A stretch of 63,498 nucleotides of DNA, filler included, from Parasitella parasitica NRRL 2501 (lineage: Eukaryota > Fungi > Mucoromycota), in assembly GCA_025201805.1 (NCBI GenBank). It is 10 parts of 10 records of this genome, joined end to end, with 100 filler letters (N's around TTAATTAATTAA, not from the genome) between each part and the next. Parts side by side here need not be neighbours in the genome. Positions count along the whole stretch, not along the records: positions 7,554 to 11,950 come from MU619287.1; 9 more parts are not named here. One strand, given 5' to 3'. The notes beneath the pieces were generated by a model that worked only from the letters and a program-made list of their open reading frames with translations, searched no databases and had not been told where the DNA came from. Both the position numbers and the translations under genes were made by a program. Numbering within the stretch: position 1 is the first letter of the stretch; each line of letters begins with the position of its first letter. Below, one piece after another: positions 2,269 to 12,065 of the stretch.

Positions 2269-3936
2269 TATACATTGACAATTTTCTAATGATGTTTGTA
2301 TGTACGCCTCCTTCCAAACTGTTTGTGCCACGAATACACCTATATACACGGGCAACCCCAACCCATCAACGTATCGAATGTGGTAGAATGGAATGCCAAC
2401 AGGATCGGAAACGTGGCCTCTGCTAATAGCATTGAGGACCTTGACAGCCTGTGCCTTACACGCTTTGTCAAAAAGCGGTAGCCCGGTCTTTGCACACTCA
2501 GTGCCTTCAAACTCTTTAAACAGTTTTTCAACAACTGGCAACAAATCGTTTGGTCTAGGAATGATTCTGCGTACCCTCTTTGCAATCCAAACAGGGCTCT
2601 CCTTCGAAACGATTTCATATGTTGTGTTCTGAAGTTTTAAAGCGTCTCCTACTTTTTTCTTGTCTTCAATACTTGGAACAAACAGGGCATCATTAAACCG
2701 AGACATAAAAATTTTGTGAGCACCATGCTTTTCAGAGATAGATATTGAGTCCATCAAATGGAACGGGTCTTTTAGCACAAGAGTTGGAGAGGTTGTGCTT
2801 TTCAATAATGAAATGTTTTCAAGTTTCAGTTTAGTAGTCTTCAAGCACCTTTGGCTAAGACGTATAGTTGTGATGTTTTCTTCCACCACATTCATTGCAG
2901 TAAACGTTTTGTCAATCTACTAGAGATTGTGTTCTCATGATGGCACACTGGAGCATATGAATCAGACCTAAAGACCTTTGATACTTGAACTGATACACAG
3001 TTTTTACAGTTTTTATATTGTCATCAGGAGACTCTACAATTTTTCAACCGCTAGCTGTTTCCCACGGCAAGTCTTTGGTGTGGCGTACACGTTGACAATA
3101 GTATCAACATTCGATTTTTGGTTTACTGGGCGGTTTAATATTTTCAGAGTCTTCAATTTTTTGAAAAATCCAGAGCAACGTAGGCATCAATAGCAGCATA
3201 CTTCCTTTCATCTGCATCTAGAACAGTAGCCTGCCAATCGCCACAGCGTACGCTACTGGGCTTAGCTAGTAGGTATTTACCCAAGACATCATCGCAAAGT
3301 TTCTGAAGTGACCATTGCTTTAATGAGTCAGTATGGCCCATTTCCATATATCTACTTCCCAGATCAAGAAAAGCTTTTGGGTGATAAGAAGTTTTGTCAA
3401 CATGGTAATCAGCTTCAAGTTTCTGCAAATCTTGTTTGACACAACGTCCCACTTTAATGACATTGATATCTTCAATCAAGAGCTTCAGCTGACCAGGCAT
3501 TTGATGGGTATTACCAAGATGAGATAGGTATACAGATTTTTTGAATGTAATTTGTATCAATGATATTTTCTGCCTAAACGAAGCTTTGTTGATATATTTT
3601 GTTGTCCACTCGCAATCAAAGCCTACTACGTATATCAGTATAATGCGACCACTGATAATATCTGCATGCAAGCAATCAATTAATCTTGAGGCCATTGTAT
3701 TAATTTGTACAGCAGATTGCATGTATATAATGGAGACATCATCAGGAAGTGTATAAGCTGGAAGGCCTGAATTGACTCCAAGCTCCTCGTTGGTATGCTG
3801 GACGGTTTCTTTCATTGATGGAATCCATCGTTCCAGACCTGGCTGATCAGCCACGACATTATCAGTGTAGAAAATACGAGGTTTTTTTTCCTCGTTTTTC
3901 AAATAAGTCTTCATCATCTCTAGAAAGCGTTCTTCC
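2269..3936 (-). pseudogene. Decayed DDE-type transposase with inserted DEDDy (WRN-like) 3'-5' exonuclease domain
   Basis: Order of motifs: FYTDNVVAD; exonuclease motifs VGFDCEW, VGRCVKQD, YAAIDA; then VLKDPFHLMD, RRIIP, GHVSDP and, after a frameshift near 2340, YRCIRGTNSLEGGVH. Both ends are cut by other elements. Confidence 0.7.
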
Positions 3937-4241
3937 TGTAATGAAATGGCACCTATTATATAGCACCACAATTACATTAAAATAAAATCCAGATGGATCA
4001 TGGCTGATCCATCCAAGAAAGAAATACATGAAAAGCACAAGTAAACATTAACAAGTGTTGGTAGAGGCTTGCACTCCTGATCAAAGTACAATCTCCTACA
4101 ACCCTGGCACATGCTAATGTTGAACAACGCTACTCATAATTACAAATAAACAAATTCTAAACATGTATAAACAATGCAATTGTTAAAACAATTGCAATAA
4201 TTCTAGATGCCAGAAATGGCTTGTTCATTACACAATAAGGA

Positions 4242-4659
4242 TGTTGNNNNNNNNNNNNNNNNNNNNNNNNNNNNNNNNNNNNNNNNNNNNNNNNNNNNNN
4301 NNNNNNNNNNNNNNNNNNNNNNNNNNNNNNNNNNNNNNNNNNNNNNNNNNNNNNNNNNNNNNNNNNNNNNNNNNNNNNNNNNNNNNNNNNNNNNNNNNNN
4401 NNNNNNNNNNNNNNNNNNNNNNNNNNNNNNNNNNNNCAGGGTACGATATATTATTATACTACAAGGTTATTGATCTTTGATCTGACAGTACCTTATTGTT
4501 TGTCAATCATACAGATCTGTGTTACAGATAACCTTCCTGATTTGAAACAAAGACTTTATTCTCCTGTTTCGACCAGTATAACAACACATCATTGGACAAT
4601 CTCCAATCTTTAATTGAAGTACACTATCATGATCTCCTAACCTACATTATGGCAGATCA
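4242..4659 (-). mobile_element. LTR family A solo LTR nested in foldback left arm
   Basis: TGTTG...GATCA termini with TSD AAGGA (4237-4241, 4660-4664). The uninterrupted target is visible in the right arm at ~5890-5905. Confidence 0.8.
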
Positions 4660-5377
4660 AAGGAAAGCTCAGTCGCATTAGAAATAATCAGGATCCTCAA
4701 ATATGACAATCCTGCCCAAAACCATAGTATCAATTTCAATACCAACATATCGAAATCTCAACTACAATACAAGTGAGAGAATGTCAACAAAAGTCATTCT
4801 TCAAATAAGCTGTAAATAAGCATTCTCACTGTAGTGAGGCAATTTTACAAGTAGTATAAATACAAGCTCTTTTAAAGATTATGTATCTTTTCTTCAGTTT
4901 TCTTTTAATCGAAAATAAAGGTGGAAAGACTACAATTGTATTTCCTTGGCTTTATTTTTTTTATTTTTTTATTTTCACATAAAATTAATCCCAATTTTAT
5001 TGCACTTCCAAATGCAGTATGGACTTTGTTGGGGCAAGAACCTTCCTACGAATCTCCTCAAATTCGTTACAAACGGTGTAAAGAGCCGTGAATATGGAGA
5101 CGCCTTTGAGTTTTGCTATTTTTTTAATAATTTTGAAGGTGTGTGCAATAAAATTGGGATCAATTTTATGTGAAAATAAAAAAAAGTAAAAAAATAAAGC
5201 CAGAGAAATACAATTATAGTCTTTCCACCTTTATTTTCGATTAAAAGAAAACTGAAGAAAACATAAATGCTCTTTAAAAGAGCTTGTATTTATACTACTT
5301 GTAAAATTGCCTCACTACAGTGAGAATGCTTATTTTACAGCTTATTTGAAGAATGACTTCTGTTGACATTCTCTCAC

Positions 5378-5778
5378 TGTCATAGAACAGGATTTGTACA
5401 TTGGTTTACCCGCGGAATTGTACAACTTTAATGTCAATTTTGTGATATAAACTTTAATAAACATTTTAGTTACCTAAAGGTATATTCGTAAAGATCTTGC
5501 CTATAAACAAGTCCATAAATTTTTTATATCTACAATACACCAATTAATGTTGTAGTTGTCAATTTCTATCTTCATCAACATCTGCTTTCAATCTTTCTAT
5601 CAGGTTTATTGGTCAATCATACATCACACCATCATGGTATATTTCTTTATCTTTAAATTCCACATTTAGTATAAATAGCAATAGTTTATTCATAGCCATG
5701 AGAAGATCCTCATCCTAACATAAAATATAACAACATCTTAAAAAGTATTTTATTTTAGTGTTTCTTCTGATTTTCACA
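5378..5778. mobile_element. Solo LTR nested in foldback right arm
   Basis: TGTCA...TCACA termini with TSD CTCAC (5373-5377, 5779-5783). Absent from the left arm. Confidence 0.75.
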
Positions 5779-6185
5779 CTCACTTGTATTGTAGTAGTTG
5801 AGATTTCGATATGTTGGTATTGAAATTGATACTATGGTTTTGGGCAGGATTGTCATATTTGAGGATCCTGATTATTTCTAATGCGACTGAGCTTTCCTTA
5901 TTGTGTAATGAACAAGCCATTTCTGGCATCTAGAATTATTGCAATTGTTTTAACAATTGCATTGTTTATACATGTTTAGAATTTGTTTATTTGTGATTAT
6001 GAGCAGCGTTGTTCAACACAAGCATGTGCCAGGGTTGTAGGAGATTGTACTTTGATCAGGAGTGCAGGCCTCTACCAACACTTGTTAATGTTTACTTGTG
6101 CTTTTCATGTATTTCTTTCTTGGATGGATCAGCCATGATCCATCTGGATTTTATTTTAATGTAATTGTGGTGCCATTTCATTACA

Positions 6186-6545
6186 CATCGGACCAAATGG
6201 CATCCTGCCATTGTTCAGCTGTCCAATTAACCTTTTCTTTGGCCCAAGCAAGTCTTTTTTCAATTTGCTTGGGTTTCAGCATTGGTACAGATGCTGGGGA
6301 ATATGACCCAAAGCCATGTCTGTCAGCATATATCGATAGCGTTTGAGGATGTATATCTATTCCAGCTGCTTTCAATCTTGCGTTATGAGTGACAAAAGAA
6401 TCATATGGTTTCTCTCTAGTACGCTGATCTCTTTCAGACAACTTAAGAGGCCTTCCGCTACGTTTTTGGATTACTCCACTTCCTGTTTTATTGTAGCGAT
6501 TGACACTTTCAGTAACGGTCGACTTTGGCAAGCACATTTCACGTG
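6186..6545 (-). pseudogene. Tc1/mariner transposase N-terminal fragment
   Basis: KSTV...RSGRPLKLSERDQR HTH region, then KRLAWAKEKVNWTAEQWQDAIWSD. Truncated at the first catalytic Asp by the foldback end. Confidence 0.85.
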
Positions 6546-7142: not shown

Positions 7143-7453
7143 TGATGTATATTTCAGATATTTCAATACAATAAAAAGAGACTTGTAATAATTCACAGCT
7201 TTCAACTGTATCCGAACAATAAAAGAAGTATATCGTTTATTATGATATAAATACAGGGTATTCATATCTTCAATCATTTACTACAACTCAGATGGTAGCT
7301 GTAATAACCAATAGATTAATGTGATAGTATGTTGTCACTGTTGATGAACGAATAGAAAATACACCGTGTTATCATTGTCAATTGGTTTGATATGTTTCAT
7401 TGTTGAGATTGATCCAAGAATATGAGCTGATGTAACATATCAAATAGTTTGTT
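7143..7453 (+). mobile_element. LTR family B (runs into gap)
   Basis: Starts TGATGTATA and is near-identical to 57361-58185 once the nested LTR A there is removed. Preceded by a purine-rich tract at 7111-7142. Confidence 0.75.
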
Positions 7454-7553
7454 NNNNNNNNNNNNNNNNNNNNNNNNNNNNNNNNNNNNNNNNNNNNTTA
7501 ATTAATTAANNNNNNNNNNNNNNNNNNNNNNNNNNNNNNNNNNNNNNNNNNNN

Positions 7554-8496
7554 CTTCAAGTTGGGCATCCCAACACCCAACCACTGGTTCATTGACTCAT
7601 CAATGACCAAGTACTTTCCAGGAGTGACACAGTCAGCCATCTTGTCATTGAAGGCCTTGATGGGAGCACGGATCTGATACAAGAGATCATTGATTTGTTT
7701 TTCCACAGTAGGAATTTCAAAAACATGCATATGCATGATGTCCTTAAATCTTTTAAAAGACATGTATTGGCAAAAGTCCACGTTCATGGTGAAATGGCTA
7801 TGCCCCAACTTCCAGTATGCCTTGAGGTTCGAGTGAGCAAGCACTGTCATTACGGTCAAGAGTGCCAGCCACATCATATACTCGTTGAAGGTAATGTCTC
7901 TCCATGCGGGGTTGACATCTCTTGCATGATGGTTGGTGTTCCTGATGATTTCATGGAAGTACTCTTGAGGTAAGAAAAACAGGAAATAGTCCAAAGGAGA
8001 AGCATCTCTGAAGCCTTCCATGTTAAGCTTGGCTCTTATTTGCTGGTAGCTTTCAGAGCAGAGTCTACTATCGACAAAGACTTCACCATTGCTCCATCCA
8101 TCACCGGGAGTCAAATCAATCTCCTCCTCGTCCTCTGATCCAGATGGTACAGCATCGTCCAAAAGATCCTCTGCCTCTTCGAATGCAGGAACAGGTACGT
8201 CAATTGGTGTAGTATTAGTATCGATCATTTGTACAGGACCGACATACTTAACACAACCTGCTTTGAGTGTCAACGTGATGGCAGGTGCTTCATCGAGAAT
8301 CACATCATAGAATCACATCATACGCGATGGAGTTTCCGATTATTGAGCGGGCAACAGTCTTTCCCTTGAAGTTCAAACTAGGTATGTTCCAATCATATTT
8401 ATTCATAAGAATAGAATTTGCGTCTGAAATCGTGATAAAACGCTTGTTGACGGATACAAGTACGTTTACATCTAATCGATTGTTAACGGGAGGCAT
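7554..8496 (-). pseudogene. piggyBac-like transposase, N-terminal half (runs into gap)
   Basis: Motifs SPLDYFLFFLP, IIRNTN, MSFKRF and PGKYLVIDESM. The frame is broken by a 13-bp tandem duplication GAATCACATCATA (8297-8322). A GC-rich subterminal repeat and TTAA lie at 8680-8739. Confidence 0.8.
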
Positions 8497-8750
8497 TTTA
8501 ATTACTATTTTTGGAAAAAAGTGAAGTTTCTTTGAAGGTAAATGCAGTGAAAGTTTATAAACAAAACAAATTCGAATCATTTAAAAAATATCTGTGTACT
8601 GTATGCAATAAACTTTGTACGCGTAGAGCGTAATTGTAAAAAATCAAACCCTCATCCATTCAAAAATCTTCATTTAGCATCGGCCCAACTGGGCTGAATC
8701 GGCCCAAATGGGCTGACCTAATCTATACTTGTTAATTAACAAATTAAATC

Positions 8751-9093
8751 CAGTTATATTTCTTATAACCGACAATATCCACCAGCCGGACTGTATTTTA
8801 GTAAAAAGCTTATTTCTGCATTTTTAACTTCGTCACATGTATGAAAATTTTCAGTTAGTTCGCAAAGTGAAAATGATAACTTATTTGTCACTTTTCTTTT
8901 CTTGATGAAATAGAATATACAGTGAATCCAAAAAGATGTACTAATTATATATAATATTTGGGCTAATTTTGATTGGTAAATTGTGATAAAAATAATCTAA
9001 GCTTGTGACATTTATTTTTCTAAAGCGGAAATTTACTTCTGGCTTTAGGCCAATTATTTTTGAGAAAATGCCAATTTCAATAAGCCTGACTGT
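8751..9093. repeat. Tc1/mariner-type MITE ends (…GCC[T/G]GACTG|TA)
   Basis: The same terminal motif followed by TA occurs at ~8794, ~9093 and ~14047. Confidence 0.45.
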
Positions 9094-9458
9094 ATATATA
9101 ATCGATGATGGAAAAAAAATCGAAAGAATATTGGTTTGGAAAGTAGGCCACATATAGTGATATTCGAATCATTTCCAATCGTTGTAATTCCATTATATGC
9201 ATTGTCATTGTCATTGCATCACATAAACATCACAAAAATATTTGTAACACACACTGGAAAATGGTGTTGTTGGCTTACCCTTGCATGAAAGCTAAACAAA
9301 TAATTGGCAGTGATTTAATAAGTTTTTTTTTCACGGTAGCTCATAGGATAAGTTGATGCTTAATGTTGCGTAATATTTTTATGATGAAAAAGGGAAACAA
9401 ATATACATAATATGGTAAAATTATTAAAATGTTAGTATTTAAGAAATTAAAAAGGGCT

Positions 9459-10640
9459 TTACTCCATGTCAACCTTGACATTACGAGTACGGAGATCAAG
9501 AGCAATGCTCTCTGGAGGTGCATGCTCATAGATAACACGGTAGATTGCAGTCATAAGAGGGAATTCTTGTGTCATGTTTCTAGCAGACAAGAAATGATAG
9601 ACTTCTTGAGATGTAGTAGTGCCTTGGAGTTTTTGGCCATTCAACATTTCTTTTTCAATCTCATCAATACTCTTACCAGACTTAATAAAGGCAGCAGCAA
9701 CCTTTCTGTTACGGCCACCAGCACAAGTAGTAATAAGATCTGCAACGCCACAAGATTCTATTGAAATGTGTGTTATTGTTTAGCTCGGCTCACAAGTTTA
9801 TGCAACTTGAGACTTACCAAAATAGGTTTCAGTGTGAACACCGCCGAAGAAAGTCTTACCAAACTTTCTCATTTCAAGCAAACCACGACGGATGACAGCA
9901 GATTTGGTATTATTGCCATAATGAAGACCATCGCAAATACCAGCACCAAGAGCAACAACGTTCTTTAAAGCACCACATACTTGAAGGCCTCTCCAATCAC
10001 CAATGACGTTGACATCAAAGTAACCGGTATGAAAGAGTTTATAAAAGATTTCACCATCCTTGGGATCTCTGCAAGCGATTGTAGTCTCACCAAACTGTTC
10101 CTCAGCAACTTCGCTGGCAATGTTGGCGCCACTCAAAGCAGCACAGTTAATACCCAAGATCTTTTCAATTTCTTCAGAAAAGATAAGTAAGTTATTGTTC
10201 TTATAGTCCAAGCCCTTGATCAAAGAAATTGCTCTACAATCCTTGTGGAGAACACCACGAAGAGATTCACAGACCTTGTACACAAATTGATGAGGCAAGA
10301 CAAAAACGAGGACATTAGCACCCTTGGCGGCTTCAACAACATCGGGAATAGCAACTACATTTTCACCGAGATCAATACCAGGAAGATATTTGACATTTTC
10401 ATGCTTTTCGTTGATGATATCAGTCAAGTTCTTGCCGTCTATTTGTTCCTCGAAAACCCACATTCGAACTTCACGCTCAAAAAGCTCGGGATGTCTTATA
10501 GTGTTTTGCGCACAAACACGAGCGATAGATGAACCCCTATATTTCGATGATGAACATCACATTCGTAATACGTATAAAATTACACTTTACCAGTTACCAG
10601 AACCGATGATCGTTACTTTTTGCTTAGGAATACCAGGCAT
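9459..10640 (-). CDS. GPD1: NAD-dependent glycerol-3-phosphate dehydrogenase (3 exons: 10640-10591, 10536-9818, 9757-9459)
   Basis: [50 protein letters not shown] and GQKLQG motifs. GT-AG introns restore the frame. Confidence 0.95.
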
Positions 10641-11346
10641 GTTGCGTAATTTGTATTGAGTTTATTTCAGTAGAAACAGGAAGAAAGGAAATAAGGTGGG
10701 GGTTGATTTTGCATCTGTTTATATATGCATTCACCATCAAGTCCGCTTAGGAGAAACATACCACAATACTATATGATGAATTCATCAAAGTAAGACATTC
10801 TATCATGTTTCATTAATTTATGACTGTTTGCAAACAGCCAGAAAAGAAAAAGAAACAAGACTCAGTGATCGCATGACGTATTGTACATTGGCAATTGGGC
10901 GCATTTCGTTGCCATGGCAATATCAATACATTTTGACAGCTTGGATCGAAAAAATAAGGGTTGCCTAGCATATCTAGTTTGGAAGAAGATATCATGTTAA
11001 ATCCTTTTTCTATAGTGTTCCTCAACCATTCTAACCATATAAACAGCAACACATTCAGGCAGTTCGGCATCTAAACGAAAAAAACGTTTTCTATTTTGTT
11101 TTTCGTAAACACCGAAAATTTACTGATAAGGAAGTTAGTTGACAGCAGGTCTTTCTCTATTTCAAGTAGATAAAGTTACGAGGATATCTGATGAACAGTA
11201 TTGCAGATTTACAGGATATCTATATTTGTATGTTCTTTGTTTAGAGGATATTATACGATCAATTGAAATCATTTCAAGTCAGGCATCTATCGGGGGTCTC
11301 ACGAATTGTTGATGAGTTACCCTGCACAATTCCCAATCTTCGACTA

Positions 11347-11564
11347 CAGTTGACGAAACTAGGTTGGGCCAATGAAAATAAATTTTGGTCATTTCCAAAT
11401 TGAGTTGGGACACGATTACAAAAATGGGTCACCAATACGAAAATGGGACAACAAGATGAAAATGGGACAACAAGATGAAAATGGGACATGAGTACGAACA
11501 TGGAGATAATGTTAGTATCTTTCAGAAGAGTCAGAATTGTTACAGCTTCTTACCTGCAATATCT
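11347..11564 (-). mobile_element. Transposon end downstream of Fanzor ORF (Tc1/mariner-like TA|CAGT terminus, 19-nt subterminal repeats)
   Basis: TA at 11345-11346 followed by CAGTTGACGAAACTAGG, then about six 19-nt units with a TGGGACA core. Second copy at 17556-17728. Confidence 0.8.
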
Positions 11565-11625
11565 TTAAGTTGCTGACTCACCGGAGTGAGCAGCAACAAC
11601 CACATTGGAGGTGGCGGTATGTCTT
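11537..11625 (-). ncRNA. Candidate Fanzor omegaRNA scaffold
   Basis: Minus-strand hairpins GCTG-CTCAC-TCCG-GTGAG-T-CAGC (11571-11593) and TTGCAG-GTAAGAAG-CTGTAA (11540-11559) straddle the stop codon. Boundaries are inferred. Confidence 0.4.
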
Positions 11626-11950
11626 TTGAAGACCTGGGGGCGGCCATTTCCACACCAAATTGATGTGGCAATGGTGAGCATGTTCTTCGAGGCCATGGCA
11701 TCGCGATTCCAGTAAATATTACAAGTTTTACACTTCAATACCTGATAAATTTTGGTTTCTTCGTTGTCATGGCTTATCTTGAAATTCTCCAGATCTTCTT
11801 TGAGACAGTTGTTGCAGATCTATGAATAATCGGTTTTAGCCGAAAATGCAATATGTGAATTATGTGTGTTTTTTTCTTAATAACCTTCGATGTTTTGAAC
11901 TCATTAATATCTACAAGTAATAGTTCACCAATTCTTTCTCTTGCTTGTAG
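11565..11950 (-). CDS. Fanzor (TnpB-family RuvC nuclease) C-terminus; exons 11950-11885 and 11819-11565; 5' part lost in gap
   Basis: Manual translation LQARERIGELLLVDINEFKTSK|ICNNCLKEDLENF...YQVLKCKTCNIYWNRDAMASKNMLTIATSIWCGNGRPQVFKR...* shows the RuvC-II Glu, two CxxC zinc pairs and the RuvC-III Asp. The 65-nt intron reads GTTATT...GCTAA...TAG. Confidence 0.88.
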
Positions 11951-12065
11951 NNNNNNNNNNNNNNNNNNNNNNNNNNNNNNNNNNNNNNNNNNNNTTAATT
12001 AATTAANNNNNNNNNNNNNNNNNNNNNNNNNNNNNNNNNNNNNNNNNNNNACAGTAGAACCCTAG

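Follow-up and report, generated by a model that had tools for sequence, protein, structure and literature searches.

Introduction

Fanzors are compact eukaryotic RNA-guided nucleases, relevant to genome editing and to the adaptation of OMEGA systems to eukaryotic cells. The locus described here, in the mucoralean fungus Parasitella parasitica, raises the question whether a short, intron-interrupted reading frame that breaks off at an assembly gap is the tail of such a gene, and what kind of element carries it. It lies in a window of 63,498 nucleotides, which is the whole stretch of DNA that was analysed; positions 7554-11950 of this window are 100% identical over 4,397 bases to scaffold MU619287.1 of assembly GCA_025201805.1 (locus L005). 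The evidence compiled below makes it very probable that positions 11345-11950 represent the right-hand 606 bp of a ~3.9-kb, non-autonomous, Fanzor1-bearing DNA transposon with Tc1/mariner-like ends. A preliminary description had placed the loss of RuvC-I and of the N-terminus at position 11951, and at this point the element is indeed interrupted in the public scaffold by 2,430 N (L005 2261-4690). The N-terminal ~580 codons of the window copy fall in this gap, and the copy can therefore not be called intact.

The gene tail in the window

The Fanzor1 portion inside the window comprises the last 106 codons, with 0 stops in frame, which provide the RuvC-II Glu, the C4 zinc ribbon, the RuvC-III Asp and the Fanzor1 C-terminal tail, distributed over two exons designated A and B (Table 1). 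Exon A, with the RuvC-II Glu and the TS of the [TS][TS]-x-x-C4 motif, is clipped at the piece edge, which is the assembly gap; as read from the related copies L004 and L008, its true start lies ~34 codons further upstream, at MPLV(V/I)FGDG. Exon B reads ICNNC...CKTCNIYWNRDAMASKNML...GNGRPQVF..., and in a longer reading of its start ICNNCLKEDL...CKTCNIYWNRDAMASKNMLTIATSIWCGNGRPQVFKRH....

The earlier claim that both visible catalytic residues are intact stands: the sequence retains the Glu of INEFKTSK (IDExxTSK in the aligned consensus), the Asp of NRD and 4/4 zinc-finger cysteines. The Asp of NRD occupies an invariant column among the homologues (R657/D658 in the numbering of P0056, a protein of 690 aa and the closest full-length relative of the Parasitella Fanzor family). 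Read across both exons, the motif TS-K-I-CNNC...CKTC-NIYWN-RD fits the pattern [TS][TS]-x-x-C4 zinc finger-x(5,50)-RD, as defined by Bao & Jurka (2013, PMC3627910).

Table 1. Features at the right end of the element and in the adjoining DNA, in window coordinates.
Feature	Position	Strand	Remarks
Exon A, last 22 codons of the penultimate Fanzor1 exon	11885-11950	-	LQARERIGELLLVDINEFKTSK
Coding-sequence intron, 65 nt, GT...AG	11820-11884	-	Sequence, and X7 contig skipping exactly these bases
Exon B, last coding exon, 84 codons	11568-11819	-	C4 zinc ribbon (TNB domain), RuvC-III NRD, tail GNGRPQVF
Stop codon TAA	11567-11565	-	Directly after exon B
3'-UTR intron, 195 nt (inferred)	11359-11553	-	Overhangs of X7 contigs 26 and 29; checked against the sequence
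19-nt tandem unit, ~5 copies	11406-11503	.	GTCCCATTTTCAT-type on the gene strand; inside and beside the terminal repeat
Right terminal inverted repeat	11345-11491	.	Ends ...CGTCAACTG + TA (11346-11345)
GPD first 5'-UTR exon, flanking unique DNA	11180-11344	-	X7 contig 26

Assignment to the Fanzor1/TnpB family

Exons A and B were searched separately, and natural proteins with the same junction (P0125 and P0263) served as stand-ins. Exon A alone gave no match in Pfam or NCBIfam. Exon B alone reached 17.4 bits (E=0.005) against Pfam PF07282 (Cas12f1-like TNB / OrfB_Zn_ribbon), below the gathering score of 26.3, because the intron splits this domain. Its match to NCBIfam IS607_TnpB was sub-threshold (E=0.035). 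Among solved structures its best match was the extreme C-terminus of SpuFz1 (8GKH; E=1.7e-4), and the mimivirus TnpB-like protein L79 was matched at E=0.21. When exon B was compared with 1.84 billion representatives, 124 matches at E<=1e-3 were obtained, headed by P0001 from Mucor circinelloides 1006PhL (89% identical, E=5.8e-45), so that a chance match is excluded.

The stand-ins gave a clearer picture. P0125 (133 aa, from Parasitella) shares 96% identity with exon B. P0263 (358 aa, from M. circinelloides) matches exon A at 100% in its residues 253-274 and exon B at 93%. Both exceed the gathering score of PF07282, with 37.6 and 35.3 bits, P0001 is likewise above the Pfam TNB cut-off, and all full-length homologues matched carry PF07282 at the C-terminus. 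P0125 matches 8GKH at E=1.1e-5 and L79 at E=1e-3, while P0263 matches SpuFz1 (8GKH) at E=5.9e-12 in two stretches, one being RuvC-I and the other running from RuvC-II to the C-terminus. A profile of 17 homologues retrieved the solved Fanzor1 proteins SpuFz1 (E=2.8e-83), PpFz1 (6.3e-58) and GtFz1 (1e-52), followed by TranC, L79, Cas12g and then TnpB/Cas12f chains (E=2e-3); direct matches to TnpB are thus weak, both for exon B and for the profile. In the homologue alignment and profile the catalytic positions D, E and D and the C4 finger are kept across the family.

Judged by these matches, the window peptide is a member of the Fanzor1/TnpB family, as the preliminary description had proposed, and does not come from a different zinc-finger family; the profile search, which could have led to a zinc-finger family of the non-RuvC kind, led to the three solved Fanzor1 proteins. 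With pairwise E-values as weak as those given above, the sequences place this Fanzor1 lineage at a distance from all three.

Transcription and splicing of the coding intron

Four public runs were compared over 7554-11950: X1, X2 and X6 are DNA, and X7 is presumed to be RNA, as judged from its behaviour. In X7 four GT-AG introns of the neighbouring GPD (glycerol-3-phosphate dehydrogenase) gene are skipped, and a stretch outside the GPD transcript contig, 8877-9023, has zero depth; X7 thus behaves as cDNA. One of its contigs contains the joint 11819->11885 ('skips 65, CT..AC') and so omits exactly 11820-11884, whereas this joint and all GPD intron joints are absent from X1, X2 and X6. The junction TSK|(I/V)CNNC is, moreover, common to the database models P0001, P0125 and P0263, which come from two genera. 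The 65-nt GT-AG intron with its stop-free splice product, first read from the DNA, has therefore been recovered in the X7 joint and in the database gene models as well.

The Fanzor1 gene family is transcribed, and its 65-nt intron is removed by splicing. This is shown for the family, and not necessarily for the window copy, since at 11721, 11747 and 11748 the X7 contig agrees with the majority copies: all three bases are G, as they are in the high-depth DNA contigs.

Full-length copies and the RuvC-I motif

A second copy in GCA_025201805.1 (L003) is also interrupted by an N gap. The gap in L005 is bridged on both sides by a metagenome contig of 3,214 nt (L004; 94-96% identical), and a complete element of 3,886 bp, with no N, is present in M. 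circinelloides (L008 2526-6411; identity 92.7% with the window part and 97.6% with L004). In L004 and L008 the order of the exons is a part aligning with the N-terminal two-thirds of P0056, then CTVDPGRRD, then PLV(V/I)FGDG...VDINEFKTSK. The RuvC-I motif CTVDPGRRD, found in L004, L008 and P0263, aligns with VIDPNKRD of SpuFz1 (E=1.6e-4). Lack of an upstream RuvC-I Asp in full copies had been named beforehand as evidence against a Fanzor; VDPGRR is found in all three of these sequences, and the question is therefore answered in favour of Fanzor.

The relatives from assembled genomes are not all complete: three of the four (L001, L002, L008) have deletions or may be broken. In M. circinelloides 1006PhL, L001 is without RuvC-I and L002 without RuvC-II, both being internal-deletion derivatives. 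The frame of L008 stops at 4825, where L004 continues for ~60 more codons, and this copy may be broken or its intron mis-called. The Fanzor gene of L008 is annotated as two genes, 3410-4825 (423 aa) and 5001-6210 (358 aa).

Ends, copy number and empty site of the element

In the DNA contigs the depth changes from single-copy to repeat at 11343-11345, with many different flanks, which marks the boundary of the element. The terminus TACAGTTGACGAAAC is identical in the window, in L001, in L002 and at both ends of L003. The terminal inverted repeats (TIRs) have an overall length of 120-170 nt (121 nt at 98% identity in L003, 140 nt at 92% in L008), and the left end of L005 (1681-1835) matches the right end in the window in inverted orientation over ~150 nt at 88%. 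The 19-nt unit within and beside the repeat occurs in 4-6 copies per repeat, the number varying between copies of the element, and a 52-nt length variant of this region is seen in the DNA contigs; these units are candidate transposase-binding sites. Every element end that was read has TA outside C(A/T)GTTGACG, with flanks diverging beyond, which is consistent with a TA target-site duplication at all of these ends, short of the proof that an exact empty site would give.

Tc1/mariner-type ends typically show TA flanks, a CAGT-type terminus and internal direct repeats. The ends of the present element resemble this type, which is a likeness and not a proof. The intron-bearing Fanzor1 gene is the sole gene of the element; no transposase-sized ORF was found outside the Fanzor exons in the 3,886-bp L008 copy or in L004, and the element is therefore non-autonomous. 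The earlier suggestion that the Fanzor rides in a DNA transposon accords with the TIR-bounded, multi-copy element seen in L003, L008 and the window.

The contig depth of the element relative to single-copy DNA in the three DNA runs (592/29.1, 727/35.3 and 2629/124.4) corresponds to ~20 copies per genome. A contig of 2,997 nt at repeat depth extends 2,768 nt past the piece edge, from which it follows that most copies in the genome are long and nearly identical.

The other Parasitella assembly (GCA_000938895.1, locus L006) has ~3.6 kb less between the same neighbour genes and aligns, with ~82% identity, across the junction obtained by in-silico excision. L006 therefore represents an empty orthologous site, at which, at only ~82% identity, a single TA cannot be verified. 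L005 and L006 are syntenic at this locus, with a PPR gene, a gene of 229 aa, GPD and TRAPPC8. Although both assemblies are labelled Parasitella parasitica, L005 and L006 share 81-87% DNA identity, a species-level divergence; perhaps one label is mistaken, or the name covers a species complex.

A separate observation concerns L003, where a Piwi-domain (Argonaute-like) ORF at 7262-8086 (minus strand) adjoins the left end of the element at 8059 and reads on into the inverted repeat. The L003 element may have landed within or next to an RNAi gene.

The 3'-UTR intron and the neighbouring GPD gene

Two X7 contigs, 26 and 29, have reciprocal 14-nt overhangs with a 30-nt overlap, which define a joint from 11554/11556 to 11358/11360; from these overhangs, checked against the sequence, a 195-nt intron in the 3'-UTR is inferred. 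Its donor, GTAAGA, follows the stop at a distance of 11 nt. Next come a TACTAAC branch-like site (11517-11511) and 150 nt without AG (a run met in ~1% of mononucleotide shuffles), and the acceptor, CCTAG, is located within the element, 12 nt from its terminal TA. Donor, branch site and acceptor are kept in L001, L002, L003 and L008. Splicing of this intron takes most of the right TIR out of the mRNA.

In the X7 assembly the GPD 5'-UTR exon adjoins, without a break, the last 14 nt of the element and, via the 195-nt intron, is joined to the 3' end of the Fanzor gene. The blocks of contig 26 are 9026-9757, 9818-10535, 10590-10973, 11036-11122 and 11180-11360, and the GPD coding sequence corresponds to window 10640-9459 (converted from the L005 gene call). 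Read-through is seen as continuity of contigs, and the share of GPD transcripts that start in the element is beyond what contigs can tell.

The surroundings of GPD were also inspected. Its leader in the X7 assembly is ~600 nt long (window 11036-11358, minus strand), with introns of its own at 11179-11123 and 11035-10974. The ~82% alignment with L006, which spans the coding region, also takes in the ~690 bp upstream of the GPD ATG, a stretch that starts 12 nt past the insertion site. On the other side of the gene, a piggyBac-like transposase fragment occupies window 7554-8303 (minus strand) and reaches out to ~9093 (Pfam DDE_Tnp_1_7, E=3e-22); it is interrupted by a second N gap, has a depth of ~14x single-copy and is covered by an X7 RNA contig. 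The piggyBac-like element is flanked by inverted arms of ~395 nt (L005 7548-7942 and 10312-10682), and between GPD and the TRAPPC8 gene ~3.3 kb are missing in the other Parasitella assembly. With the Fanzor element on one side and the piggyBac-like element on the other, the GPD gene is bracketed by two young DNA transposons.

Guide RNA, selection and alternative readings

Folding of the right end (239 nt, and pieces of 112-126 nt from three copies) was no better than that of shuffled sequences, with z of +0.2 to +0.6, and an Rfam scan of the right end returned chance-level matches only. The 3'-UTR intron removes most of the region expected to hold the ωRNA scaffold. An ωRNA derived from the intron itself was considered and rejected, since the intron stops within the element, 12 nt short of the terminal TA, and so cannot carry a guide derived from the flank. 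As no ωRNA was located, the Fanzor1 protein is presumed to be an RNA-guided nuclease by homology with SpuFz1, GtFz1 and TnpB.

The coding part of Fanzor1 has evolved under purifying selection. Between the window exons and L008, pN/pS is 0.18 (6 nonsynonymous and 9 synonymous differences; Fisher p=9e-4), and the values between species span 0.18-0.27; within the genome, the comparison of the window with L003 gives 0.8, on 4 differences only. This last value would suit the view that the window copy is a dead relic, that is, a truncated or mutated Fanzor pseudogene whose 3' end is passively transcribed, for instance in the long 5' leader of GPD. Such a view also accords with an N-terminus hidden in the N gap, with the deleted copies that are common in M. 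circinelloides 1006PhL (L001, L002), and with the continuity of the X7 RNA contig with GPD. It is nevertheless quite improbable: the 106 visible codons are stop-free with all motif residues intact, the repeat-depth contig that continues past the edge means that most of the ~20 copies are long and nearly identical, and pN/pS between species is 0.18-0.27.

A different function for the whole family can also be envisaged, in which it was domesticated or catalytically re-purposed, e.g. as a DNA-binding or transposition-accessory factor without RNA-guided cutting. While the lack of a detectable ωRNA structure and the stripping of the expected scaffold region from mature transcripts by the 3'-UTR intron could be read in this way, the family has kept its catalytic D, E and D residues and its C4 finger throughout, and the gene sits in a mobile, multi-copy, TIR-bounded element and not at a fixed host locus, which makes re-purposing extremely improbable. 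The reading preferred here remains that of a Fanzor1 gene carried by a mobile element.

Proposed mechanism and divergence compared with a host gene

By analogy with the characterised systems, the Fanzor1 protein would bind an ωRNA transcribed from the right end of the element, the 3' guide being provided by flanking sequence, and the resulting RNP would cut guide-matching DNA beside a short TAM. Such cutting might let the element re-home, or persist after excision by a Tc1/mariner transposase supplied in trans.

Two further proposals are put forward as a pair, of which one or the other might hold, although this is rather doubtful: either the 195-nt 3'-UTR intron is a switch between mRNA and ωRNA, or the element moved horizontally between the Mucor circinelloides lineage and Parasitella. 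In the case of a switch, spliced read-through transcripts would be the mRNA, free of inverted-repeat sequence, and unspliced nuclear transcripts would be the ωRNA precursor, with the right-end scaffold still joined to the flank.

As to horizontal movement, pS of the Fanzor exons (window 11568-11950) against the M. circinelloides copies L008 and L001 is 0.12-0.13, and the 65-nt intron of the window Parasitella copy is 92% identical to that of the M. circinelloides copies. For the GPD exon (window 9819-10463 vs L007/L006), the corresponding pS values are 0.54 (Mucor ambiguus) and 0.38 (other Parasitella assembly). The contrast between 0.13 for Fanzor and 0.54 for GPD (Fisher p=2e-8), which is based on one host gene with 67 synonymous sites and takes M. 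ambiguus as a proxy for M. circinelloides, suggests an element much younger than the split between the hosts, possibly as a consequence of horizontal transfer between the mycoparasite and Mucor. Parasitella is a fusion parasite (mycoparasite) of Mucor hosts. On the other hand, the Fanzor family is graded across the Mucorales, which weakens the case for horizontal transfer.

Relation to known systems and significance

The best solved relative of the window gene is SpuFz1 from Spizellomyces punctatus (PDB 8GKH, 9CEU-9CEZ; Saito et al. 2023, PMC10432273). Common to SpuFz1 and the Parasitella Fanzor are the tail YWNRD..N.L.I..S...G.GRP.VF, the RuvC-II motif DE(Y/F)KTS and the RuvC-I motif (I/V)DP..RD, and in both cases the element is multi-copy, its inverted repeats enclosing one Fanzor gene but not a transposase (PMC10432273); the pairwise similarity is nonetheless low (E=1e-4 to 1e-11). 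The SpuFz1 locus consists of one ORF of ~2.1 kb with 30-nt repeats (PMC10432273), whereas the Parasitella element is ~3.9 kb long, has several introns, one of them in the 3' UTR, and is bounded by repeats of 120-170 nt with 19-nt units; unlike that of SpuFz1, its ωRNA is putative. PpFz1 (PDB 9CF0-9CF3; Xu et al. 2024, PMC11423790) carries the same host species name, Parasitella parasitica, and is of the same family, but represents a different lineage, as indicated by its PDB matches (E=0.55 with P0125, E=0.0025 with P0263). By length it is also the larger protein, with 1,259 residues in the MBP-fusion chain compared with 690 aa in P0056. For PpFz1 itself, an additional FRI insertion, to which cyclophilin binds, is described (Xu et al. 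2024, PMC11423790).

With its TA flanks, TIRs, Fanzor1 as the only gene and Mariner-like ends, the element is like those of the PUl-4 type (Bao & Jurka 2013, PMC3627910; Jiang et al. 2023, PMC10530073), and intron gain in Fanzors has been documented as well. Ten Fanzor1 families have already been listed for Mucor circinelloides (Bao & Jurka 2013, PMC3627910). As GNGRP, CKTCNIYWNRD and the terminus CAGTTGACGAAAC are absent from the supplementary sequences of MCi-1 to MCi-10 in that work, the Parasitella family is not among them; MCi-1, the only Mariner-type MCi (PMC3627910), differs in its C-terminus and terminus and has its own Mariner transposase. The architecture of RuvC-I, RuvC-II and RuvC-III with a zinc ribbon (TNB) is shared with TnpB of IS200/IS605 and IS607 (OMEGA systems) and with Cas12f. 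In contrast to the TnpB insertion sequences, the Parasitella Fanzor is eukaryotic and intron-bearing, and the ends of its element resemble the cut-and-paste, DDE kind and not those of a Y1 or serine-recombinase IS.

Fanzor1 itself, introns in Fanzors, the association with Mariner/Tc1 ends and the abundance of Fanzors in Mucorales are thus already documented, and a paralogue of the window gene has already been annotated with a TNB domain. The window gene adds a member to Fanzor1, not a new kind of system. The only unusual aspects are the 3'-UTR intron and the divergence contrast, which are leads rather than findings.

The family is young (~20 near-identical copies); it is transcribed, its transcripts are spliced, and purifying selection has acted on it. 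These properties recommend it as a candidate active enzyme, one distinct from the three solved Fanzor1 proteins. If true, the 3'-UTR intron would bear on how one transcript serves as both mRNA and guide RNA in a eukaryote, and the divergence pattern would point to exchange between a mycoparasite and its Mucor hosts.
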